Positions 10,937 to 59,733 of a DNA stretch of 64,000 nt are shown here, piece by piece. Each line of letters begins with the position of its first letter. Position 1 is the stretch's first letter. The position numbers were made by a program, and so were the translations under genes. The notes under the pieces were generated by a model. The model was not told where the DNA came from and did not search any database. It worked only from the letters and a program-made list of their open reading frames with translations. The stretch lies in sequence record NC_061444.1; one strand, written 5' to 3'.

Positions 10937-10961
10937 GATTTGTCTCCTTATATGACTGTCT

Positions 10962-10969
10962 GAAATTAT
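10962..10969 (-). promoter_or_regulatory. Putative phage promoter motif B (TAATTT)
   Basis: ATAATTTCAGACAG, 26 nt upstream of the sheath start and just downstream of a terminator. Confidence 0.5.
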
Positions 10970-10990
10970 CGTATAAGCGACAAGAAATGC

Positions 10991-11017
10991 AAAAGGGGCA
11001 GCCGAAGCCACCCCTTT
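10991..11017 (-). terminator. Rho-independent terminator (repeated GGGTGGC-TTCG-GCTGCCC family)
   Basis: GGGGTGGC-TTCG-GCTGCCCC-TTTT. Confidence 0.8.
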
Positions 11018-11020
11018 GTT

Positions 11021-12106
11021 TTAACAATCACAACCTACTGAATCGAAGTCGAGTTTCAGGCCAGGATAGAGTTCATTAAACTCCGTAAGCGGCATATTGA
11101 AACCGGCAGCACTGACATGGCCATCGCCACCACGAGTACGCGCAATATAACGAGCGCTACCCTTATGACCTTCAGGATATCCCTGAGAGCGACAGCTAAC
11201 GTAAACACGGTCTGGGTCACGATGACCTTTACGTACCAGCAGCACTGTCTGGAAGTGTGCATAGTTTTCGTAGACGTAGGTACCTGTTTCAGATGCGATG
11301 CCTTTGTCACAAGGCACCACAGCGTGTTTCACATCAATCAACGAGTTAGGCTCTGAGAAGAAGCTGTTCTCCTCAATCATCTGACGAATCTTTTCGTCAC
11401 GGATTTCGATATTCTTGAAACCTTGTTCGATGATTTGTTCGATATTGCCAGCAAGGATAATCTTGTAGGCTTTACGAACGGTCGGCGGCATTTCAGTGTA
11501 GACATGACCACACTTCTCTACTTCCGAGAACACGTCTTTCGAATAACCTTCGTAGAACGCGAACGCACGTTTGTTTGTGCGAATCCACAGGTCACGGTCT
11601 GACACCAGCTGCGCACAGCGAATGAGGTTATCGGTGCAAGCATACTGGTGCTGTTGGAACTCAGATACATGAGCCATGTACGCGAGCAGCGCACCACTGC
11701 CACCAGCAGCGAAAGTAAGTTGCAAAGGACTTACTTGCTTACGCACACCTTTATCGTCGTAGGCTTCGATGGCAGCGCACTCTTCGGCATACTTCTCGTG
11801 GCTGCGACAATCATGGTGGTCGAGCACCTTGAAGTTACCGCCATAGCGATGCGTGAAGATAGCCATCTGCTTTTCAGTGAAAGAGAAGTCAACTACAATA
11901 ACGCGTTTATACAGCGCATCTTTACCGCCTTCGAGCCCAGGAATATCTTCCATGAGAACTCCGTCAGCAGTAACTATATCCCCTTGATCTTGTGCGTAGA
12001 CAGCAGGGAAGAAGTGGAGCGTATCGTTGGGATACGCAAGTGCTGTAATAGCAGCGGCAAAACTACCATCAGCACATCCTTGATGATAAACAACAAGTGT
12101 AGTCAT
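11021..12106 (-). CDS. DHH-family phosphoesterase (NrnB/nano-RNase-like)
   Basis: YHQGCADG, VVDFSF, LDHH, SGALLAY, DRDLW, C-terminal GGDGHVSAAGF. Confidence 0.85.
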   Translation of the reverse strand: MTTLVVYHQGCADGSFAAAITALAYPNDTLHFFPAVYAQDQGDIVTADGVLMEDIPGLEGGKDALYKRVIVVDFSFTEKQMAIFTHRYGGNFKVLDHHDCRSHEKYAEECAAIEAYDDKGVRKQVSPLQLTFAAGGSGALLAYMAHVSEFQQHQYACTDNLIRCAQLVSDRDLWIRTNKRAFAFYEGYSKDVFSEVEKCGHVYTEMPPTVRKAYKIILAGNIEQIIEQGFKNIEIRDEKIRQMIEENSFFSEPNSLIDVKHAVVPCDKGIASETGTYVYENYAHFQTVLLVRKGHRDPDRVYVSCRSQGYPEGHKGSARYIARTRGGDGHVSAAGFNMPLTEFNELYPGLKLDFDSVGCDC

Positions 12107-23063: not shown

Positions 23064-23100
23064 CTAGTCCTATCAGAGTGTATCACAATTCGATGGCTGT

Positions 23101-23109
23101 TATTTACAG
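23101..23109 (-). promoter_or_regulatory. Putative phage promoter motif A (CTGTAAATA)
   Basis: Exact motif between a terminator and the polymerase start (38 nt). Confidence 0.55.
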
Positions 23110-23121
23110 ATTCCGAAACGC

Positions 23122-23148
23122 AAAAAGGGCAGCCGAAGCCACCCTTTT
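23122..23148 (-). terminator. Rho-independent terminator (repeated family)
   Basis: GGGTGGC-TTCG-GCTGCCC-TTTTT. Confidence 0.8.
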
Positions 23149-23151
23149 GGA

Positions 23152-24138
23152 TTAAAGTTTACGCAGACCTTTCTTAATCGCAGCATTGACTTGCGCTGCT
23201 GACGGGTCTTTCGTTGCAAACAGATCGATAACGTTCGTGATTGAGTCCAGCTCGCCAAGATGAATCTGGACGTTCTGCACTTTCTTCAAGTGGTCAGCGA
23301 TGAATGTCATCAGCCAGCCCTTCTGCTTCATGACAACAGCAACTTCAAGGTCCTTGTATGAGAACGAGAACTTATTGCCGGTAGCATGAAGCAATTTCGC
23401 AGCACCCGGAATAGGCTCGACAGCGCGGATAAACTCCGGCGCATACTGTCGGGCAGTCTTAGTGCGTAAGACAGAGTACGCTGGGTCAAACGTCCGCAGC
23501 TTGCTCTTAACTTTAGGCTTAGACCCAGGAGTACCGCCAGTCTGTTTCTGATCTGGGTTCTGCGTCCACGTCAGACCTTCATCCAGACAGTTCTGGCCGG
23601 TCATAGCTTCCTGAATGATGACACGCTTATCTTTGCCTGTCTCAACATTCTTCTCAGCTTCTGCCTCGGTCTTGAACGGACCTTTGACGATGATATCGTT
23701 GGCGTGACGAGTGTGGTCGATAACGTACCACTTGTTGCGTTCGATCTTACCGTTCGCGTCTACGGTGTTAGCGCGTACAGGACGGGTCGTTTTCGCAGGC
23801 GCGTTCTGCTGAATAGCGACAGGCTTGATCTTGATTGCACGAAGACCGTTGATCGTAGCCACCAGCGTCTTGGCTTTATACAAGTTCTTCATCGCAGTGA
23901 CAAGATTCTTGCCAGCAGCTTTCTTGGCCAATGCGGTGGTTGCATCAGCATCGTTCAGTACGTCGAGAACGGCAGACAGCTTTGCAGTGTCCAGTTCTTT
24001 GATCTTCACCAGCTCGTCGATCTTCTTAACGATAAGTTTTGCGTTCTTACCGAAGAGGATTTCAGCATTGGCGATCTGCTTCTTGTTGGCTGCGGAGACT
24101 GATACCACCGCGCCTGAAGGTAGAGTGATTTCGTGCAT
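23152..24138 (-). CDS. Basic Lys/Ala-rich protein, putative internal head protein
   Basis: 328 aa; N-terminus MHEITLPSGAVVSVSA carries the shared S-x-S-A motif. Confidence 0.5.
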   Translation of the reverse strand: MHEITLPSGAVVSVSAANKKQIANAEILFGKNAKLIVKKIDELVKIKELDTAKLSAVLDVLNDADATTALAKKAAGKNLVTAMKNLYKAKTLVATINGLRAIKIKPVAIQQNAPAKTTRPVRANTVDANGKIERNKWYVIDHTRHANDIIVKGPFKTEAEAEKNVETGKDKRVIIQEAMTGQNCLDEGLTWTQNPDQKQTGGTPGSKPKVKSKLRTFDPAYSVLRTKTARQYAPEFIRAVEPIPGAAKLLHATGNKFSFSYKDLEVAVVMKQKGWLMTFIADHLKKVQNVQIHLGELDSITNVIDLFATKDPSAAQVNAAIKKGLRKL

Positions 24139-24707: not shown

Positions 24708-25160
24708 TCAGGCTGACTTTGGCAGAGGAGGAAGTGGCTTCCCGTTAACGCGATTAAAGATTCGAGATGCACCGATACCGTCAGAGTTATACTGCTTACT
24801 GGCCTGACGGAACTCCATAGGATGCTTCTCAATCCAATCGAGAACGTTCTGCATCTGAGCAGCGGTAATGACTTTCGCCTGCACACGCTTCTGTAAGTAC
24901 AAGCGAATGCCGTGACCTGTAGCACCGCTGGTGCTTTCGACAGAGCTAACACTGCGAATAACGCTGGTAGCAGCTTTGGCTGGAGACAGACCTTTAGCAA
25001 TCAGGTCTTTCAGCTTCTTAGGGTCGGAGTTCAGAAGTTTGATGCAGTCGTTGTACTGCGTCTGGGTGATCTTACCTGCTTTCTTACGCGCAGCAAGTTC
25101 GTTCCATAAAGAGGAACGCCCAACAACTGCGGCACTTAAACTGATAGTGATTTTAGCCAT
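24708..25160 (-). CDS. Basic protein, putative internal head protein
   Basis: 150 aa; N-terminus MAKITISLSA; two similar helical repeats (ITQTQYNDCIKLL / ITAAQMQNVLDWI). Confidence 0.5.
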   Translation of the reverse strand: MAKITISLSAAVVGRSSLWNELAARKKAGKITQTQYNDCIKLLNSDPKKLKDLIAKGLSPAKAATSVIRSVSSVESTSGATGHGIRLYLQKRVQAKVITAAQMQNVLDWIEKHPMEFRQASKQYNSDGIGASRIFNRVNGKPLPPLPKSA

Positions 25161-43893: not shown

Positions 43894-44403
43894 TTACTCC
43901 TTAATCATCTTGACGCGCGTATGATCAAATATACCAAAGGTAGGAACATCATGGTGCTCACCCTCATTACCTTTGATAGAATCATAGCCCGCCAGTTTTA
44001 GGATTTTACTGATCTCTGTATACTCGTCCCACCACATGTACACTCGCTTGTGTTGATTAGCAGGTATGTGTTTGTTCAGAGCATCCAGACGACCGACTAG
44101 TGTTATCGCTTCATCTTTGCCAACCAGATGCAACTGAAAGGCTTCCATGATTAGCTGTTTCACTCGTCTATAAATCTCAGCGAACCGTACTTCCGTCCAC
44201 AGAGAACGGAATTTCAGGCTGGCATAGCGACCTGGGTCCGCATGAAACTTGTAGAGGCGCCCACCTTCCGCATACTTCTCAGCATACGCACGATCTGGTG
44301 TTACCCAAGTCATGTGTTGCTTCTTAGCATGTTCATCTGACCAGTCTTCTGCAAGACCGCGATAGTAGATTGTAGGCGCACTTAGGCTGACGAAGATCTG
44401 CAA
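43894..44403 (-). CDS. ADP-ribosyltransferase-fold (ART-PolyVal-like) protein with shared N-terminal peptide
   Basis: TTG start, MQIFVSLSA; YYRG, WVTPDRAYAEKYA, GRLY, GYDSI, FGIFD..RVK. Confidence 0.5.
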   Translation of the reverse strand: MQIFVSLSAPTIYYRGLAEDWSDEHAKKQHMTWVTPDRAYAEKYAEGGRLYKFHADPGRYASLKFRSLWTEVRFAEIYRRVKQLIMEAFQLHLVGKDEAITLVGRLDALNKHIPANQHKRVYMWWDEYTEISKILKLAGYDSIKGNEGEHHDVPTFGIFDHTRVKMIKE

Positions 44404-46328: not shown

Positions 46329-46934
46329 TTAGACCAGGGCTCTGCCTGGGAGATCGAAGTTTTTACCGGCTGAGTAATCACCCAGCGCTTGGTACAGGGA
46401 GTTGCGTAGCATCTGCTCAATGATATCTGAGTTGTGTGCCGAAGCGTCTTTGAAAGAGACCTCGATCGACTCAGTTCTCGGATTCACAACTGCATACCGC
46501 AGAGGACAGATAGCCTGTGCTTCACACCACGCATCGACTTTAATCTGCAAGTCAGGTGTTAATGGAATGCGGAAATCACTTAGCTGAAACACAACGCTTT
46601 GAATTGGTGGAGGGGAGGACTGAGACAGGAACTTACCGTTCACATTCAATCGCTCCATAGCGTTTGCGGCTTCATAGATCGTCTGATAGCCGTCACCGAT
46701 TGTAGTGAGGCTATTGAGCTTGAAGCTATGCGTTGTCAATCCTTTACGAATCAACTTGGCGATATTAAGCTCATAATCACCAGAGTCATCTCGCATAAAA
46801 GTGACGAACGCGTAGAAGGCGAAACCATCTTCTTCGCGTAAAAGTTTGTGATCTAATACACGAAAGCCCACGACACTTTGCAGTGCCTGGGCTGTGATTT
46901 GCGTCGCCTTAGATAGGGAGACGTAGATTTCCAT
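46329..46934 (-). CDS. Hypothetical protein with shared N-terminal peptide
   Basis: 201 aa, MEIYVSLSK. Confidence 0.6.
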   Translation of the reverse strand: MEIYVSLSKATQITAQALQSVVGFRVLDHKLLREEDGFAFYAFVTFMRDDSGDYELNIAKLIRKGLTTHSFKLNSLTTIGDGYQTIYEAANAMERLNVNGKFLSQSSPPPIQSVVFQLSDFRIPLTPDLQIKVDAWCEAQAICPLRYAVVNPRTESIEVSFKDASAHNSDIIEQMLRNSLYQALGDYSAGKNFDLPGRALV

Positions 46935-50203: not shown

Positions 50204-50520
50204 TCCACTGTGTTCAACGCATTAGCAGTGTACTCGCGCAGAGTACGTTCGATATTTGTCGCTAACGTAGGATGACAGATCAGCTGGTGGTCTTTCATGT
50301 ACACACGCAGCGAAGGTCGCATCACCTTACGCACTTTAGGATAAAGACCGAATATGCGATGCAGAGGAGTTTTGAAGTAGAACTCCTCTTGCTCCTCCAT
50401 GCAGTTGTGATTAGCAACAACTTCGTATTTGGCAAAGATGCCTGGGTTGCGATTTATATACGCAGGGTCGAGAGGCACACTGCCCTTCTCGTGCTTAGTA
50501 TCAAGCTGACCGAAGATCAT
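50200..50520 (-). CDS. Hypothetical protein
   Basis: 106 aa, TAATG coupling to sbcC. Confidence 0.65.
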   Translation of the reverse strand: MIFGQLDTKHEKGSVPLDPAYINRNPGIFAKYEVVANHNCMEEQEEFYFKTPLHRIFGLYPKVRKVMRPSLRVYMKDHQLICHPTLATNIERTLREYTANALNTVE

Positions 50521-52856
50521 TACATCACCTTACGCGTGAGTGCGGACCTGCCCTGTTTCTTGGTCACAGTCCACTGATTGTTAGAGAAGTGCTCAACGTC
50601 ATTCGGAGTTATCCAGTAGATGTTCGGGATAATCTGTTTGAGTATTGGCAGGAAGTTATTGATGATATGCTCACTGACTGCTGGGCTGCAACTGTTATCA
50701 GGCTCGTCGAGAATGATAAAGTTCGTGCGGCGATTAGCAGGGATGAATGGCATGATCGCTACAGCAAACAACAGGCGGAAGCAGTTAGTCTCTGCACCAC
50801 TCATGATTGCAATGTCGGTTGTCTTCTTAGAAGACACACGCGTAACGGTAGCGCCAACACCTTGCTTAGTCGTGAACAAATCGAAACGCATAGGCTCAGG
50901 GAATACCAGACTGGAGTATTCGTTCAACTTCGCCTCAATCTGTTTGATACGACCTTCAACAGCTTTCAGTTTGAGTGCGTTGTTGCTGTATGCCTTGTAC
51001 AAGACTTCGAACACCTTGCGCTTATCAATCAGCGGTTGCAGGTCTGCGAGTTTACCACGAAGCTCTTTGAGAGTTTCCTCGTAGTGCTCATGCTCCTGAA
51101 TACGCATCTGGATGTTCTGCGCTTTGCGTTCTTTCTTCTCGATATCGGTAATCAGCTTTTCAACTTCGGCGCTTACCTTTTTATATCGGCCATCGAGAAT
51201 GTAGAATGGATCTTCCGGCTCACCAACAGCTTTGAGTGCAGCACGAATGTCTTTCAGAATCTCAAGGTCCTTGATGCGGTTCTTGATTGTCTTACGAGCT
51301 TTCTTAGGCTGCTTCACTGCTTTTGGTTTCTTGAGCGCATCACGTCTGGCCACCAGCTTCTCATACTTCTTCGCTGTCTCGAATTGTTCTTCGATATCGT
51401 CCAGAGCAGCACCGACAGCTTTGAGTTTACGCTCAAGGTCTTTGCGCTTATGCTTAGGCTTCTTCACTTTGTTGTCTTGCAACTCGGTGAGTTCTGCATT
51501 CAGCTTGTGATATTCGATTGCTTCAATGCACTCGTCAATGATTGCCTGAGCTTTCGTTGCAGCGCGAGCCATAGCTTTCAGGTTAACACCCTGACCGCAC
51601 GTAGGACAAGAGTTGCCGTCGTGATCGTGTTCTTCAAACGCGCGATACGCCTGAACTATTGCTTTGGCTTCTGCTCGGGAATCCTGTGCCTCTTCCTGAG
51701 TTCGTTTAGGAGCTTTGAGCTTAGACAGCTTTTTACTGAGCTTGTCCACTGCTTCTCGCCAGTCGTCGTACTCTTCCTGCTGTTCATCGACTTTCTCCAA
51801 TAACGCTTCGAGGCTTTCTTCCTCTTTAACTAAGCGTCCATGTTCTTTGCGTAGCTTTTTGTTGTCGAGATCAGCAACATCACCAAGCGCTTTGATTTTC
51901 TTTTTGACTTCGGACAGTTCAGACTGATACTCGTCCAGAGCTTCGACAAAGGCATCGTAGCGATCATGTTCTTGCAACAGACCGCGCAGATTGTTCAGTT
52001 CACCTTTAAGGTCGTCTGTCTCAATTCCCAACGTGTCGAGTTGGTGCTTGAGTTTTTCGTACTTCTTCGCAGTAGAACGTTGGGTACCGAGTTCAATCAA
52101 TTGCTCGGACAACTCATTACGCCGCGCTTTCATCTTGTCAGAATGCTTGATGATTGCTTTCAGCGTATTCTTTTCTTCTGCGTGAATAGACAGAGCGTTC
52201 TGCTTACGTTGTGTAACGTCAAGCATATCAGCAAGACCCTTCGATTCTGTCTCGGCGTCTTTGGCCAAGTCCAGTTTCTTCTTCAACGCCTGTCGAATGT
52301 TGTCGAAGATATCGAGGTTGAACAGCGAGGTCAGGTACGTCAGGCGTTCAGCAGGTGTAGCGCGTTGGAACGGATGCTGAATCTGCGACTGAATGTACGC
52401 ATAACTATAGAACTCGTCACGCGTTAGTGGCCAGTGCTTTGTCACCCAAGAGCGAGCAACATCCTGACGATCTACTTTCTGGTTCTCACCGTTGTAGAAT
52501 ACCTGATACTTTGTTTTGGTCTGAATAATACGAACTTCACCACCAAGAGGTGATTGCCATGCAAGCTCGATGGAGCTGTCTTTGCCTAGCATGTTCCCCT
52601 TGTCTTTCTTTTTCATTGCAAGAGGATCTGCTTCGTACAGCAGAGTAGGTATAGCACCGAACAGGAGGCTTTTGCCTACACCGTTCGTATTGTCTTTAAC
52701 ATTAGGACTGTCGAGGTTCTTACCACAAATGGTTGCGAAGCCTTCACTGTCCAGTGTAGCAATATCAAGTTCTTCGTAAACACCAACATCACGCAGATGG
52801 ATTTCTTTCAACCCTATCCCGTGATGATGTTTCTGCTTTTGCTTCGCTTTGCCCAT
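50520..52856 (-). CDS. sbcC: SbcC/Rad50/gp46-like SMC-type ATPase
   Basis: GKN...NGVGKS Walker A, long coiled coil with CPTCGQ zinc hook, MSGAE signature, ILDEPD Walker B. Confidence 0.9.
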   Translation of the reverse strand: MGKAKQKQKHHHGIGLKEIHLRDVGVYEELDIATLDSEGFATICGKNLDSPNVKDNTNGVGKSLLFGAIPTLLYEADPLAMKKKDKGNMLGKDSSIELAWQSPLGGEVRIIQTKTKYQVFYNGENQKVDRQDVARSWVTKHWPLTRDEFYSYAYIQSQIQHPFQRATPAERLTYLTSLFNLDIFDNIRQALKKKLDLAKDAETESKGLADMLDVTQRKQNALSIHAEEKNTLKAIIKHSDKMKARRNELSEQLIELGTQRSTAKKYEKLKHQLDTLGIETDDLKGELNNLRGLLQEHDRYDAFVEALDEYQSELSEVKKKIKALGDVADLDNKKLRKEHGRLVKEEESLEALLEKVDEQQEEYDDWREAVDKLSKKLSKLKAPKRTQEEAQDSRAEAKAIVQAYRAFEEHDHDGNSCPTCGQGVNLKAMARAATKAQAIIDECIEAIEYHKLNAELTELQDNKVKKPKHKRKDLERKLKAVGAALDDIEEQFETAKKYEKLVARRDALKKPKAVKQPKKARKTIKNRIKDLEILKDIRAALKAVGEPEDPFYILDGRYKKVSAEVEKLITDIEKKERKAQNIQMRIQEHEHYEETLKELRGKLADLQPLIDKRKVFEVLYKAYSNNALKLKAVEGRIKQIEAKLNEYSSLVFPEPMRFDLFTTKQGVGATVTRVSSKKTTDIAIMSGAETNCFRLLFAVAIMPFIPANRRTNFIILDEPDNSCSPAVSEHIINNFLPILKQIIPNIYWITPNDVEHFSNNQWTVTKKQGRSALTRKVM

Positions 52857-53065
52857 TAGATATACTCGTAGGTCTTTTCTTGGATCAGGCCTTTGCCGTG
52901 AATCTGCTCGAACACTTCGATTTCATCGGCAGTGTATTCTTCGGCAGACTCTGCGATCACGTCATACGCGTATGACTCGTCACTCGTATCGGACTCAACG
53001 AGTTTAACGATACGCCAGAGAGGTACCTGCACAGGCTCGCGCTTTAACATGGTTGCATTCGTCAT
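52856..53065 (-). CDS. Small acidic hypothetical protein
   Basis: Start moved to ATG 53065 (TAATG coupling); 69 aa. Confidence 0.6.
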   Translation of the reverse strand: MTNATMLKREPVQVPLWRIVKLVESDTSDESYAYDVIAESAEEYTADEIEVFEQIHGKGLIQEKTYEYI

Positions 53066-53274
53066 TAGTGAATCACCGTCGTTGGTTCGATCCACAATTC
53101 AACCGCGTTGTATTTCTTACGCAGTTCGTTCAGTACCTTGTCAGACACAGGTTTGGGTGAGGAGAAGATGCACTGAGGTACTTTCTCCTCTTGTCCTGTC
53201 ACTGGGTTGATATCGAGATCGTGACGCATTACGTTCCAGCGCTTATTCTCGCGGATATTGATAGTCTGTTTCAC
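53065..53274 (-). CDS. Small hypothetical protein
   Basis: 69 aa, first gene after motif A. Confidence 0.6.
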   Translation of the reverse strand: MKQTINIRENKRWNVMRHDLDINPVTGQEEKVPQCIFSSPKPVSDKVLNELRKKYNAVELWIEPTTVIH

Positions 53275-53311
53275 AGCAGGTACCTATTATTTCAGTATGA
53301 ATGATACTCGT

Positions 53312-53320
53312 TATTTACAG
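53312..53320 (-). promoter_or_regulatory. Putative phage promoter motif A (CTGTAAATA)
   Basis: Exact motif after a terminator, heading the sbcC operon. Confidence 0.55.
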
Positions 53321-53337
53321 TTTTAAAGGGTATAGAC

Positions 53338-53370
53338 AAAAAGAAGGGCCACCAGCATAGGCAGCCCTCT
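53338..53370 (-). terminator. Rho-independent terminator
   Basis: GGGCTGCC-TATGCT-GGTGGCCC-TTCTTTTT. Confidence 0.7.
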
Positions 53371-53372
53371 TT

Positions 53373-53822
53373 TCAGTAGCGTCTCGGCTTCTTAGGTTTC
53401 TTAGGCCTCGTAGATTTAGGACGCTTAATGCGTTGCAGCGCTTTACGTGCCTCTGCAATCTGACCAGACAGTGCTGCGCGTTGCTTCTTCGTCGCATCAG
53501 TATCTTGCTCAGTGCCTTTGAGTTTCTCAAGGCGATTCCACTCTTTGACCAAGCGATCCACAACAGCGGCACGGGAGACACGTTGTTGGTTGGTGCGCAC
53601 AATATCCTGTTGCGTCTTAACAGAGCGTTGAGCGTCAAGCACTTTGTTTCGTGCGGACTCTACACCTTTCGTATCACCTTCGGACTGTTTATCGTTAAGA
53701 GCTTTACGTGCAGCATTCGAACGGCGCTGTGCCCCTTTCAGGTCATCACGCGAGTTCTCTAAACTGACTTTAGCTTCTTCGAGTGGGCTTGAACGCACAC
53801 TCAAACTAACCATGATTTCCAT
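53373..53822 (-). CDS. Basic coiled-coil protein with shared N-terminal peptide
   Basis: 149 aa, MEIMVSLSV; Lys/Arg/Pro-rich C-terminal tail. Confidence 0.6.
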   Translation of the reverse strand: MEIMVSLSVRSSPLEEAKVSLENSRDDLKGAQRRSNAARKALNDKQSEGDTKGVESARNKVLDAQRSVKTQQDIVRTNQQRVSRAAVVDRLVKEWNRLEKLKGTEQDTDATKKQRAALSGQIAEARKALQRIKRPKSTRPKKPKKPRRY

Positions 53823-53828
53823 AGGACC

Positions 53829-54380
53829 TCACACAGGCTGTATGGTGAGAATTGTGTACTGACCTTCCTTACGTGTGCCAACGACTTTGAACTTATAGCC
53901 CACAGGGTAGATCCATTCTTTCTCTTCCTCTACACCCTCAATGAGATCGTCACGCCATTCTTCGTCACCAGAAAAGGCTTCTTCGAGAGGGATAGACAGG
54001 ATGTAATCTTTCAGGCGCTGGTGGTAGTTAAAGCCCTTGAGTTTGGGCGATGGTGCAGGTAAGAGTTCGAGCACAACATGAACCTCTGCGAACTTCTTGG
54101 CGATAGCCTTATCCTCAGAGAATGACATGTAACGATTCAGACGAGCGTAACCCTGTTCTTCCAGTTGCTCATTGATCCGGCTTTGCTCTTGTCGATAGAT
54201 GCCGCGATACAATGGCTTCTTAGGGACTTCGGAATACTTTCTGATAAGTTCATTCAAATCATCATCACCACCAAACGCAGAGATGATCTGAGACTTGTCG
54301 TGAATAAGACCCATCAGAACTTCTTGTTGTTCTTCTGTGTACTTAGGTACTTTTGCGCTAAGACTAACGTGAATTTCCAT
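53829..54380 (-). CDS. ADP-ribosyltransferase (R-S-E class, Alt/Mod-like) with shared N-terminal peptide
   Basis: MEIHVSLSA; LYRG, YMSFSED..IAKKFA, EEKEWIYPVGYKFKVV. Confidence 0.75.
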   Translation of the reverse strand: MEIHVSLSAKVPKYTEEQQEVLMGLIHDKSQIISAFGGDDDLNELIRKYSEVPKKPLYRGIYRQEQSRINEQLEEQGYARLNRYMSFSEDKAIAKKFAEVHVVLELLPAPSPKLKGFNYHQRLKDYILSIPLEEAFSGDEEWRDDLIEGVEEEKEWIYPVGYKFKVVGTRKEGQYTILTIQPV

Positions 54381-54397
54381 ACGTGCTCCGTAAAATG

Positions 54398-54424
54398 AAA
54401 AAGGGCAGCCGAAGCCACCCTTTT
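54398..54424 (-). terminator. Rho-independent terminator (repeated family)
   Basis: GGGTGGC-TTCG-GCTGCCC-TTTTT. Confidence 0.8.
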
Positions 54425-54511
54425 GTAGATGGCGCGCTATGCACCCGACTGTTAAGTCTACTACGGTTATTTTACCTCGCAGTAGTCAGCGAGGAGATTG
54501 GGATCACCTCC

Positions 54512-55048
54512 TCATGCTGATTGAAGATCGACAACTTCATCGTCTTCGATATCAGCGGCAGACCACGAACGAAGCACGGACGCATTGCCGCGATTGCCTG
54601 TCAACATCATTTTGATTGACGGTCGAGCATCGCGCTCTGCATAATGGTCGATAAGAGCTTTGTCATTAGCGAACCACAAAATGGAGTGACCACCTTTAGG
54701 GCAGATCAAGAATTGAGGTGGACGCTGAGGAACGTTCAACGTCATGTAGAAATCACCAGCGCCAGTAGGACCAACCATAGGCATTGGCTTCATGACCTGC
54801 ATAAAATCAGTGGCGTCTGTAAGACGTTTATCGCCCAGCAACCAGATAGCACCCTCTTCACCTTCACGCACAGCAGACAACGTGCCTTTGCGTGTAGTGA
54901 TTGAACCGAATACGTCTTGGTCAAATCGTGCAAGACCAAAGATAAGCGATGCGAGTTTCTTTAAGTCAGGCGTGGTACATGGACTTTCGATCTTCGCCAT
55001 GCCCTCAGACCCAACTGTAATCTTCGAGAGTGATACAAAGATTTCCAT
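54512..55048 (-). CDS. Hypothetical protein with shared N-terminal peptide
   Basis: 178 aa, MEIFVSLSK, first gene after motif B. Confidence 0.6.
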   Translation of the reverse strand: MEIFVSLSKITVGSEGMAKIESPCTTPDLKKLASLIFGLARFDQDVFGSITTRKGTLSAVREGEEGAIWLLGDKRLTDATDFMQVMKPMPMVGPTGAGDFYMTLNVPQRPPQFLICPKGGHSILWFANDKALIDHYAERDARPSIKMMLTGNRGNASVLRSWSAADIEDDEVVDLQSA

Positions 55049-55157: not shown

Positions 55158-56441
55158 TTACTTCTTCTTTTTCTTTTTCTTCTCTTTGGGTTCGTCGTCT
55201 TCATCGTCGTTACCCAAATCAACCACCAGCTTGCCACTGTAGATATCAGACATTGTTCTGGTGATGCCTGTTTCCAGCATGATATCCGCAGGTACCGATG
55301 TAGAGTTGAATGCTACTTCGGCGTCTGCTAATGCTGATTGCAGATACACCAGACTGACCAGATTGACTTTGATTTTGTCTTTCTTGATCATGTTCATAAA
55401 CATCTTGAGGCCAGCTGACTGCCACTTATTCGTTTCGGCGTAATGACCCAGCACACCGTGAATGATCCAACGCGCTTTCGCTACGATTGCACGAGGGTTG
55501 TTCGCTTCACGCAGGAACTGAATAACACCAATCAGGTCCATACTGAGATAAGCACCAATCATCTGAACTGCTTTCGCTTCCATGTCGATTTCTGGATCAG
55601 CAGCAGCGAGTTCTGCAACGAGGTTCTTATCAAAGTCTTCGCCGCCTTTAACAGACGAGTAAATGTTTTGCAGCATGGTGATTGCACCACGCATCTGACC
55701 ACCAGCGTATTCTGCAACCTGATACAATGCCGCTTCTGCTTTCTCACGCGCTTTGTCTTTCTTCGGCATGATATCCAGCTTCTCGCCAATCTCAACCAGA
55801 CGCTTATGAATCACGTCAGTTGGAATAGGTCTGATAGGCAGTTGCGTCATACGACTGATCATCGTGCCTTTCATCTTCTCTGGGTTCGTTGTTACGAAGA
55901 TGAAGACAACGTGCGCTGGTGGCTGTTCGGTAATCTTGAGCAGCTTGGATTCAGCAGCACTGGACATGAGGTGCGATTCATCGAAGATAAACACGCGACG
56001 TTTGAACATAGGGCTTAACGGTGCAGAGTCAACGATCTTCTGTGAACCGTCTACTTTACCTGCATCGCCACCCATATCAAATTCTTGTACGTCCATGTGA
56101 CCGCCAGTTTCCATAAGCTGACATGAACGACACTTGCCACACGCAGAGAACGAATCGCAGTTGATGTACTTCGCTACCAGACGTGCGAACGTTGTCTTAC
56201 CAGAACCGAGGTGGCCGGTAATGATCATCGTTGACGGAATCGTTTTCGACTTCTGCCAACCTTTCATGATCTTAACGATGTGGTCTTGACCAACGTAGTC
56301 TTCGATACGTTTAGGTCGGAACTGATCAGCAAAGTTAACCGTAGTCAACTCAACTGACTCAGAAGAACCGCTTTTCTTTTTCGATGGCTTATCGTCACCG
56401 AAGGAACGCGCTTTCTTCTTTTTCTTTTCTTCTTTCGCCAT
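55158..56441 (-). CDS. dnaX: Clamp loader AAA+ subunit, DNA polymerase III gamma/tau (DnaX)-like
   Basis: RPKRIEDYVGQDHI, GHLGSGKTTFAR, CGKCRSC, DESHLMS, LLKITEQPP..VVFIFVTT, TMISR; Lys-rich ends. Confidence 0.9.
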   Translation of the reverse strand: MAKEEKKKKKARSFGDDKPSKKKSGSSESVELTTVNFADQFRPKRIEDYVGQDHIVKIMKGWQKSKTIPSTMIITGHLGSGKTTFARLVAKYINCDSFSACGKCRSCQLMETGGHMDVQEFDMGGDAGKVDGSQKIVDSAPLSPMFKRRVFIFDESHLMSSAAESKLLKITEQPPAHVVFIFVTTNPEKMKGTMISRMTQLPIRPIPTDVIHKRLVEIGEKLDIMPKKDKAREKAEAALYQVAEYAGGQMRGAITMLQNIYSSVKGGEDFDKNLVAELAAADPEIDMEAKAVQMIGAYLSMDLIGVIQFLREANNPRAIVAKARWIIHGVLGHYAETNKWQSAGLKMFMNMIKKDKIKVNLVSLVYLQSALADAEVAFNSTSVPADIMLETGITRTMSDIYSGKLVVDLGNDDEDDEPKEKKKKKKK

Positions 56442-56478: not shown

Positions 56479-56487
56479 TATTTACAG
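56479..56487 (-). promoter_or_regulatory. Putative phage promoter motif A (CTGTAAATA)
   Basis: Exact motif 38 nt upstream of clamp loader start. Confidence 0.55.
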
Positions 56488-58186: not shown

Positions 58187-58762
58187 CTATGCCCTCAAAT
58201 CAACCAAGATAGACGCAGACAAATCTCGGAGCATGTCACGACCGAGAGGTGTATACATCGTTTGAGCTACCACAATGCGTTCAAGGAATAGGCGCGAGCT
58301 AATAACATCTCTGCCTGTTTTCTGTTGAACGAAGTCGATGATTGATGATGGAGGTTGAATGAGGAACGTTAAGATCTCAGCATCGTGCAGCACGTTGCCC
58401 ATCTCTGTCACAGGACGCATCTCTGTCTCCTGATCGAGTATGTAAGAGATCACACGGTCCTCATTACCAATATTGCGATGTGTCTTGAAGAACCTACGTG
58501 CAGCATTAACAGTCTGCATGAAATCGTATTCCGAAGAAGTCGGCATACGGAGAAATAGGGAAGCGAGCAGCAGATTTATTTCTAACTTCGGACCTTGCTC
58601 AATGTTCAGCATGGCGTGTGAGGTTAACACGACATTCAGCGAGAAGTCACGAGTGTAGAGTGGGTGAGAGATCGCTGTCTGATCGAAGTAGTCAAGGGCT
58701 TGACGTAACCCTTGACGATTCAACAGGTGCTCTGCCTTGATACGAGTTAGGCGCTGCATCAT
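58187..58762 (-). CDS. Hypothetical protein, possibly degenerate HD-domain fold
   Basis: 191 aa, helical; VLHDAEIL and LLLASLF recall HD hydrolases but the canonical HD pair is missing. Confidence 0.45.
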   Translation of the reverse strand: MMQRLTRIKAEHLLNRQGLRQALDYFDQTAISHPLYTRDFSLNVVLTSHAMLNIEQGPKLEINLLLASLFLRMPTSSEYDFMQTVNAARRFFKTHRNIGNEDRVISYILDQETEMRPVTEMGNVLHDAEILTFLIQPPSSIIDFVQQKTGRDVISSRLFLERIVVAQTMYTPLGRDMLRDLSASILVDLRA

Positions 58763-59733
58763 TCGCCGCTACTAATCTCTTTCAGGCTGTTCTTGATTGC
58801 CTTACGCAACGTCTTGCCTGTGTCGATGCCGTCGATGTGACGAGCGAATACGTTAGCGAACAGCGTGGTTGGATTTTTCATAATCGCTTTATCAAGGTCA
58901 GGACGACCCTCAGCGATTTGCATTTCACCAGGCCAGAGTTCTGCTACTGCCGCGCTGTCAGTCGCTGCGATCATTTCCAGTTCGCGGACAGAGATAGAGT
59001 TCTGCCGTGCGATAGTGCGGAAAATCATGTCAACAAAAGGCAGCAGGTCTTCGGACACAACGTTCTTAACGTCTTTCGCGTCACCAGCACGTTGGAAGTC
59101 TTCGAGCAGACCAGTAAGAGTGCTCAGGTTCAGGCGCTGCACATTGCGCAGTTTCTTGAACAGCAGCATCCACTTGACCTTGCGCTTAGAACTCAGCAGG
59201 TGAGTCCACACTGATTCACCGAGAGCGATCATCAGTTTGTTGTAGACGTCAACCGATACGCAGTCACGATCAACGAACACATTGATCTCGTCGTGCCATT
59301 CGTCCTTGCGGAACTTAGAGCGGAACGAGTGTGTCTTCGAACCAGACTGCTGGATGAAGTTGATTTGCTTGCAGCGACGAACCGCTTCTTGCAGATTGTA
59401 CTTCTCGATAATCTTCGGAAGTTTCTTGACTGCGATGCGACACGCTTTAGCGACTTCGGCCTCACGCCCATAAAGAGCAAGACGAGGCAGACCGCCATAG
59501 ACAGGCATCGAAGCATATGGTCTGACAGTCACACCACATACTGACATACCTGGCTCTGGGTCTGGGCCGAGAACAGCAAGCACGTCACCAGCTTTAGGAC
59601 TGAACTTAATTGTTTCTGGTTCAGGCGAACCAAGCGTATTAGCCAGAAGGCCAACAGTTTTGCCGGTTGCCAGAACAAGATGATTTTTATTACCCTGTCT
59701 TACGACAACGTAATCTCTTTCACTATGTTTCAT
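58759..59733 (-). CDS. Hypothetical protein
   Basis: 324 aa, typical codon pattern, ATGA overlap. Confidence 0.7.
   Translation of the reverse strand: MKHSERDYVVVRQGNKNHLVLATGKTVGLLANTLGSPEPETIKFSPKAGDVLAVLGPDPEPGMSVCGVTVRPYASMPVYGGLPRLALYGREAEVAKACRIAVKKLPKIIEKYNLQEAVRRCKQINFIQQSGSKTHSFRSKFRKDEWHDEINVFVDRDCVSVDVYNKLMIALGESVWTHLLSSKRKVKWMLLFKKLRNVQRLNLSTLTGLLEDFQRAGDAKDVKNVVSEDLLPFVDMIFRTIARQNSISVRELEMIAATDSAAVAELWPGEMQIAEGRPDLDKAIMKNPTTLFANVFARHIDGIDTGKTLRKAIKNSLKEISSGE

Follow-up and report, generated by a model that had tools for sequence, protein, structure and literature searches.

[quoted passage not shown] The CTS brings every internal head protein of T4 into the prohead core, and the prohead protease cuts N-terminal propeptides off these proteins and off the ADP-ribosyltransferase (ART) Alt (PMC5694885). 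Alt is injected and modifies RNA polymerase at once; ModA and ModB are early gene products that are not part of the virion, and both have the R-S-EXE motif characteristic of arginine-specific ARTs (PMC10468400). According to a survey of viral NAD/ADP-ribose systems, ARTs and Nudix proteins are often packaged in myovirus virions, usually fused to MuF or portal domains or contained in polyvalent proteins, the ARTs of which are predicted to travel in virions (PMC9503650). ARTs in jumbo phages are already known (PMC7824862, PMC9503650).

Here we describe gp211 of Erwinia phage pEa_SNUABM_32, a jumbo phage of the genus Alexandravirus whose host is Erwinia amylovora. The DNA analyzed, called the window below, is a stretch of 64,000 nucleotides that corresponds to bases 124001-188000 of record NC_061444.1 (265,891 bp). 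The gp211 product resembles T4 ModA and ModB in size (183 aa versus about 200), sequence (27-29% identity), predicted fold (TM 0.66-0.77) and R-S-ExE motif. Unlike these enzymes, which are early and non-virion, it begins with an 8-residue tag that is missing from the T4-like Mod proteins, and its gene forms part of a cassette array in a jumbo phage not related to T4.

The resemblance to Alt and the other CTS-bearing proteins of T4 is of a different kind. In both phages a short N-terminal peptide is the sole common part of diverse small proteins, an ART among them, encoded at variable loci (PMC3012670, PMC5694885), and this likeness is one of sharing pattern rather than of aligned tag sequences. 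It differs from the T4 case in that no Glu-type cleavage site was recognized after the tag, gp211 is Mod-like and not Alt-like, and packaging is proposed by analogy. Fusion to MuF or portal domains, or inclusion in polyvalent proteins, offers an ART an alternative route into the virion (PMC9503650), and a tagged cassette of Dickeya phage JA29 encodes an ART-PolyVal; unlike the fused enzymes, gp211 is a free-standing protein of 183 aa with a tag in place of a fused structural domain. In phage P1, an N-terminal signal suffices to direct DarB into the myovirus capsid (PMC9024508), but the P1 signal spans more than 9 and fewer than 30 residues and has been demonstrated for a single protein, whereas here a putative signal of 8 residues occurs on nine proteins. 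We found no description of the tag, or of the tagged cassette array, in the literature searched.

gp211 and its predicted enzyme

A sequence-only reading of the window had placed a 183-aa open reading frame beginning MEIHVSLSA at 53829-54380, strand unstated, and had seen in it a compact ART of Mod size. The reading frame is real and the coordinates were correct; the strand is minus, the plus-strand reading of the same interval having been rejected because its translation is full of stops. RefSeq annotates the gene as 'hypothetical protein'. Its parts are as follows.

53829..54380, minus strand: gp211 (YP_010300988.1), 183 aa, an 8-residue N-terminal tag followed by a predicted ModA/ModB-family ADP-ribosyltransferase (open reading frame, PHROG, tblastn, AF2, Foldseek)
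54357..54380, minus strand: tag, codons 1-8 of gp211 (MEIHVSLS), common to nine genes, low in pLDDT and outside the Mod homology
53832..54344, minus strand: predicted ART domain, about residues 13-183, with R59, S86-x-S88 and E153-x-E155 (conserved columns and PDB profile matches)

The R-S-E triad had been proposed from three short motifs, and it is not a chance pattern. LYRG contains R59 (codon 54204-54206), YMSFS contains S86 (codon 54123-54125) and S88, and EEKEW contains E153 (53922-53924) and E155 (53916-53918). In an alignment of 120 homologues E155 was invariant, and K29, L57, R59, G60, S86, A94, F97, E153 and W156 were each conserved in at least 90%.

Database searches placed gp211 with the Mod enzymes. 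It matched PHROG 832, 'RNA polymerase ADP-ribosylase', with an E value of 2.1e-15, and Pfam DRAT at 4.6e-5, below the family cut-off. A tblastn search of 50,697 phage records gave matches in 993, mostly to modA/modB of T4-like phages, with 27-29% identity over about 90% of the length and E values down to 7e-11. Nine Snuvirus records matched at 43% identity, and RefSeq names the Snuvirus homologue 'RNA polymerase ADP-ribosylase'. Using a profile built from the closest metagenomic homologues, we found 188 relatives in 1.84 billion representative proteins, 127 of them at E <= 1e-10; the closest homologues carry a precomputed assignment to Pfam family PF26816. When compared with PDB, the family profile matched the ART domains of Vis, ExoT and ExoS, with the YRG, S-x-S and ExE blocks in alignment. 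The profile was required for this result, since a PDB search with the single gp211 sequence gave no meaningful matches. NCBIfam and PADLOC gave no matches for gp211, gp210, gp212 or gp199.

The predicted structure bore out the same assignment. The AF2 model of gp211 had a mean pLDDT of 93 and a pTM of 0.87, and its 50 best Foldseek matches in PDB were all ARTs of the R-S-E (R-S-ExE) type (probability 1.0, TM 0.37-0.58), including Vis, HopU1, Certhrax, ExoT/ExoS, XopAI, an ART toxin/immunity pair, C3, VIP2 and iota/CDTa. The top-ranking named entries in BFVD were models of ModA/ModB from T4-like phages (TM 0.66-0.77), and ART domains within portal, 'head morphogenesis' and minor capsid proteins were also among the matches.

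By predicted fold and catalytic motif, gp211 is a Mod-family ART. It is a new member of that family; the enzyme itself is ordinary, and relatives have already been named by automated annotation. It is probably arginine-specific, since the R-S-EXE motif of the Mod family is typical of arginine-specific ARTs (PMC10468400). By analogy with the Mod family, whose substrates include RNA polymerase alpha and S1, its activity would be NAD-dependent and directed at host proteins.

A variable array between the clamp-loader and SbcC-like genes

The gp211 gene lies amid replication genes, outside the head module. Tagged genes occur between the clamp-loader and SbcC-like genes in all relatives examined, which comprised Alexandravirus, Snuvirus, Sasquatchvirus Y3, Yoloswagvirus, Salmondvirus JA29/JA11, Yersinia phage fHe-Yen9-02 and metagenome contigs L009, L011, L023, L027, L033 and L036. 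In the window this region contains the following features besides gp211.

55158..56441, minus strand: gp213, clamp loader (DnaX-like), upstream border of the array, in the same synteny in all relatives
54512..55048, minus strand: gp212, 178 aa, tagged; phrog_31786
54399..54424, minus strand: terminator-like hairpin between gp212 and gp211, 18 nt upstream of the ART start codon
53373..53822, minus strand: gp210, 149 aa, tagged, coiled-coil-like with a basic C-terminal tail; phrog_28362
53344..53369, minus strand: terminator-like hairpin after gp210, ending the gp211-gp210 pair
50520..52856, minus strand: gp207, SbcC-like exonuclease, which bounds the array downstream and is separated from gp210 by two small genes without the tag

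The constant members of the array are the gp212 and gp210 families, and the slot between them varies.

AD1 and most Alexandraviruses: slot empty
SNUABM_32 and Snuviruses: Mod-like ART
Y3: a 256-aa protein without assigned function
L009: a 277-aa protein without assigned function and an ART
JA29: gp192, 225 aa (L016:5600-6277, plus strand), a tagged ART-PolyVal (PF18760, E 2.3e-27, above the curated cut-off)

In Dickeya phage JA29, a predicted ART of an unrelated family has thus replaced the Mod-like ART at the same place. A second slot, 3' of gp210, holds other tagged genes. In many Alexandraviruses the gene after gp210 belongs to a tagged family that starts MELTVDLSK, represented by AD1 gp202 (L002:3323-3844, minus strand) and by homologues in L020-L029. 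This family, for which we found no family match, has a 94-aa form and a form of 171-173 aa, the longer of which seems to be a twice-repeated module.

We compared the locus with those of two relatives. Relative to SNUABM_17, the closest, the ART is a 561-nt insertion equal to the ART gene. Identity to SNUABM_17 in the flanks (L031; window 52856-54540) was 98.7% upstream of the insertion and 79% downstream, and the cassette therefore marks a recombination breakpoint. Relative to AD1, homology stops 8 nt into the ART reading frame and resumes 1 nt before the gp210 start codon, so that the ART cassette is bounded by two tag starts. As judged from these genome alignments, gp211 entered the phage as a single-gene cassette in the variable array.

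We also examined the region for expression signals. The gp210 gene starts 6 nt downstream of gp211. Hairpins nearly identical to the one upstream of gp211 (core GGGTGGCTTCGGCTGCCC) precede gp160 and gp175 (within window 10937-11046 and 23064-23173), and a hairpin stands no more than about 25 nt from the start codon in three tagged genes, gp211, gp246 and gp178. The motif CTGTAAA[TC]A occurred 35 times in the whole record against 5.6 expected, in the window for example at 56487, 53320 and 56831 (all minus strand). It lies mostly 30-50 nt 5' of replication-type starts (DNA polymerase, clamp loader, SSB, sigma factor) and probably acts as a promoter element of the phage. For another motif, CTAATTT[CT]A, we counted 7 copies, all 5' of minus-strand genes, including sheath-like gp137 and the endolysin gene. 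Neither of these promoter-like motifs was found upstream of gp211. A one-mismatch variant of the motif found 5' of gp137 and the endolysin gene precedes gp212, and no predicted terminator separates gp199 and gp196 from the endolysin gene, gp201, which they follow. These sequence features hint at late expression for gp199, gp196 and gp212 only, and not for gp211.

About 4 kb upstream of the array is gp218, a 'peptidase' (phrog_17197; window 58759-59733, minus strand) found in synteny in all relatives. It had no Pfam or PDB sequence match and no structure match.

The N-terminal tag

The sequence-only reading had described a putative capsid-targeting leader at the start of gp211. A shared N-terminal leader does exist, and it is more widespread than that reading had it. 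We scanned the whole phage genome for every ATG, GTG or TTG start with a reading frame of at least 60 aa. Among 6527 candidate starts, 11 matched the tag pattern against about 0.7 expected from a rough residue-frequency estimate, and 9 of the 11 were real genes: gp122, gp178, gp196, gp199, gp210, gp211, gp212, gp237 and gp246. A tag of the exact type would be expected about 5e-5 times at the N-terminus of 336 proteins, again as a rough estimate. The tag is thus present on both neighbors of gp211, gp210 and gp212, and also on gp199; every array gene bears it, as do five or more genes at other places in the genome. The tagged genes mapped outside the array are listed below; the remaining one, gp237, encodes a charged low-complexity protein.

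Record 91157-91615 (L004:41157-41615), outside the window, minus strand: gp122, predicted Nudix hydrolase (PF00293, E 7e-13), tag MMINVSLSA
24708..25160, minus strand: gp178, 150 aa, tag shifted by one residue (MAKITISLSA)
43894..44403, minus strand: gp196, tagged, 169 aa from a TTG right after the gp197 stop codon; the RefSeq start is 30 codons later
46329..46934, minus strand: gp199, 201 aa, tagged, on the same strand as the endolysin gene gp201
Record 201330-201659 (L007:1330-1659), outside the window, plus strand: gp246, 109 aa, tagged

Several of these proteins merit separate comment. Among the PHROG matches of gp122 is a family of portal proteins with a Nudix region. The RefSeq start of gp196 is probably too late, the true start being 30 codons upstream, because the 30-codon extension is kept as coding sequence in the divergent metagenome relative L009 (L009:17975-18484). 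We considered gp196 as a second ART on account of a YYRG after its tag and rejected it, the hhalign probability against the ART profile being 0.6%. gp246 is possibly HEPN-like, having weak, sub-threshold matches to the Csm6/Csx1 HEPN region (Pfam PF09670, 1.2e-4; PADLOC Csx1, 3.6e-4). The AF2 model of gp212 was of moderate confidence (pLDDT 77), with a disordered tag (residues 1-10, pLDDT <50) and no significant fold match.

In gp211 the tag is predicted to lie outside the folded ART domain. Residues 1-10 of the AF2 model had a mean pLDDT of 58 and no secondary structure, and in tblastn the homology of T4-like Mod proteins to gp211 began at residues 10-14.

To characterize the tag further we collected 51 distinct tag-coding sequences from pEa_SNUABM_32, its relatives and metagenome contigs, representing at least six genera. 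Residue counts (n=51) were as follows.

Position 1: M 51
Position 2: E 32, K 11, Q 5, R 3
Position 3: I 39, L 7, others 5
Position 4: variable (L 15, F 14, and others)
Position 5: V 31, I 19, F 1
Position 6: S 44, D 5, A 2; Ser in six codons
Position 7: L 49, F 1, M 1; Leu in six codons
Position 8: S 50, T 1; Ser in six codons
Position 9: variable (K 18, A 13, and others)

Because the search pattern pre-selects residues, we placed weight on codon diversity and on alignments of the gp210 and gp212 families, which were assembled by homology. In the gp210 family (7 homologues from 6 genera and a metagenome contig) M1, S6, L7 and S8 were invariant; in the gp212 family M1 and S8 were invariant, and S6 and L7 nearly so. 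The gp212-family genes of Yoloswag (L015:5007-5474) and SNUABM_5 (L034) lacked the tag as annotated or as read in the reading-frame scan; in these two phages the gp210-family gene carries it. Among the tagged genes, upstream DNA is unrelated and the tag codons differ. The Ser and Leu positions of the tag use all six codons each, and it follows from this codon usage that selection acts on the tag peptide.

It could be argued instead that the 5' end is kept as DNA, either as a recombination handle or as a translation-initiation element, and that the peptide has no function. The insertion junctions do fall inside the tag's opening 8 nt (ATGGAAAT), the stretch with its strongest conservation at the DNA level, and at codon 2, GAA is used in 32 of the 51 copies and GAG in none. 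Such an origin is nonetheless hard to reconcile with Ser-Leu-Ser at positions 6-8, where each residue appears in all six of its codons, including TCN/AGY switches that need two base changes, or with the unrelated sequences upstream of the tagged genes. An 8-nt handle may aid cassette exchange but cannot account for a conserved peptide. We rejected this explanation on the basis of codon diversity and regard it as the least probable of those considered.

Virion loading and other possible roles of the tag

The best explanation for the tag, to which we assign a probability of roughly 0.5, is that it is a virion-loading signal and that tagged proteins are injected. We rated it best because of the T4 CTS precedent, because both domain types reported as packaged, ART and Nudix, are tagged in this phage, and because the tagged cassette of JA29 is an ART-PolyVal. 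The 8-residue tag would then mark cargo for loading, much as the T4 capsid targeting sequence does, docking proteins to a part of the assembling virion, probably the prohead core, and tagged proteins would arrive in the next cell together with the DNA and be active ahead of any phage gene expression. In this scheme gp211 would be an accessory mono-ADP-ribosyltransferase, acquired as a single-gene cassette in the array, that uses NAD+ to modify host proteins; by analogy its targets may be the transcription or translation apparatus, or a defense protein.

We looked for independent evidence of packaging. The searched literature contained no virion proteome for a tag-carrying phage, either an Alexandravirus or a close relative; the AD1/JA paper is without virion proteomics and the Y3 GenBank record without proteomic notes. 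For the distant relative PaBG, 14 abundant virion proteins are known from gel bands, none of which could be linked to tagged proteins, and 100 kb of PaBG sequence contained one weak tag-like start. The phage encodes a head maturation protease, gp145 (phrog_18299), which had no Pfam or PDB sequence match. Neither a Glu-type site nor any other conserved cleavage motif was found after the tag across the families, and none of the head-module proteins inspected bore the tag. The N-terminus of the major capsid protein was inspected for a similar motif; a stretch there, L-A-L-S-E (residues 30-34), resembles the end of the tag, but nothing consistent emerged across families.

A second explanation is that gp211 is made in the infected cell like ModA and ModB and never packaged, and that the tag serves another role common to small effectors, such as recognition by a protease or chaperone, of the phage or of the host, that limits lifetime or activates the protein, or localization to a site in the cell. 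It would agree with the non-virion status of the closest family, ModA/ModB (PMC10468400), with the position of gp211 amid replication genes, with our finding neither a cleavage motif nor proteomic support, and with the conserved position of the 'peptidase' gp218, some 4 kb upstream of the array across all relatives. gp218 is, however, without a family or structure match, so no link to the tag can be drawn from it. Short N-terminal tags on unrelated small phage proteins have, moreover, so far been known as virion-loading signals (PMC3012670, PMC9024508), and the tagged set is rich in domains reported to be packaged in virions, namely ART, ART-PolyVal and Nudix (PMC9503650). On balance we consider an exclusively intracellular role unlikely.

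If tagged proteins are virion-borne, they might instead be carried on the tail tip or tube, on a VgrG/PAAR-like spike, in the manner of the cargo effectors of contractile injection systems. The phage does encode PAAR- and VgrG-like tail proteins, and the alternation of hydrophobic and small polar residues in the tag is what might be expected of an edge strand joining a beta-sheet. The spike genes, however, have no tagged neighbor and such a tag has no precedent, while the basic tail of gp210 and the charged, low-complexity gp237 would seem more like DNA-associated internal head proteins. We therefore regard carriage on the tail as highly improbable.

Loading into the virion, as the preferred reading, may extend beyond this phage. 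That the tag is a general cargo-loading signal of this jumbo group, comprising Alexandra-, Snu-, Sasquatch-, Yoloswag- and Salmondvirus and uncultured relatives, is a more tentative proposal, to which we give slightly less than an even chance. The tag is of interest in that it is very short, is conserved as a peptide in at least six genera, and marks fast-changing small proteins that include NAD/ADP-ribose enzymes. If it is a loading signal, it would add to T4 a second, independent natural system whose injected proteins are recognizable from sequence, and eight residues would be able to make an injected, Alt-like enzyme out of a Mod-type one, which in T4 is non-virion. If the signal is general, the injected set of pEa_SNUABM_32 would consist of a Mod-type ART, a Nudix hydrolase, possibly a HEPN-like protein, and six proteins without assigned function, and the region bounded by the clamp-loader and SbcC-like genes would be an exchange hot spot for injected effectors. 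Phages of this kind are used against fire blight, and what they inject into their host would therefore be of practical interest.
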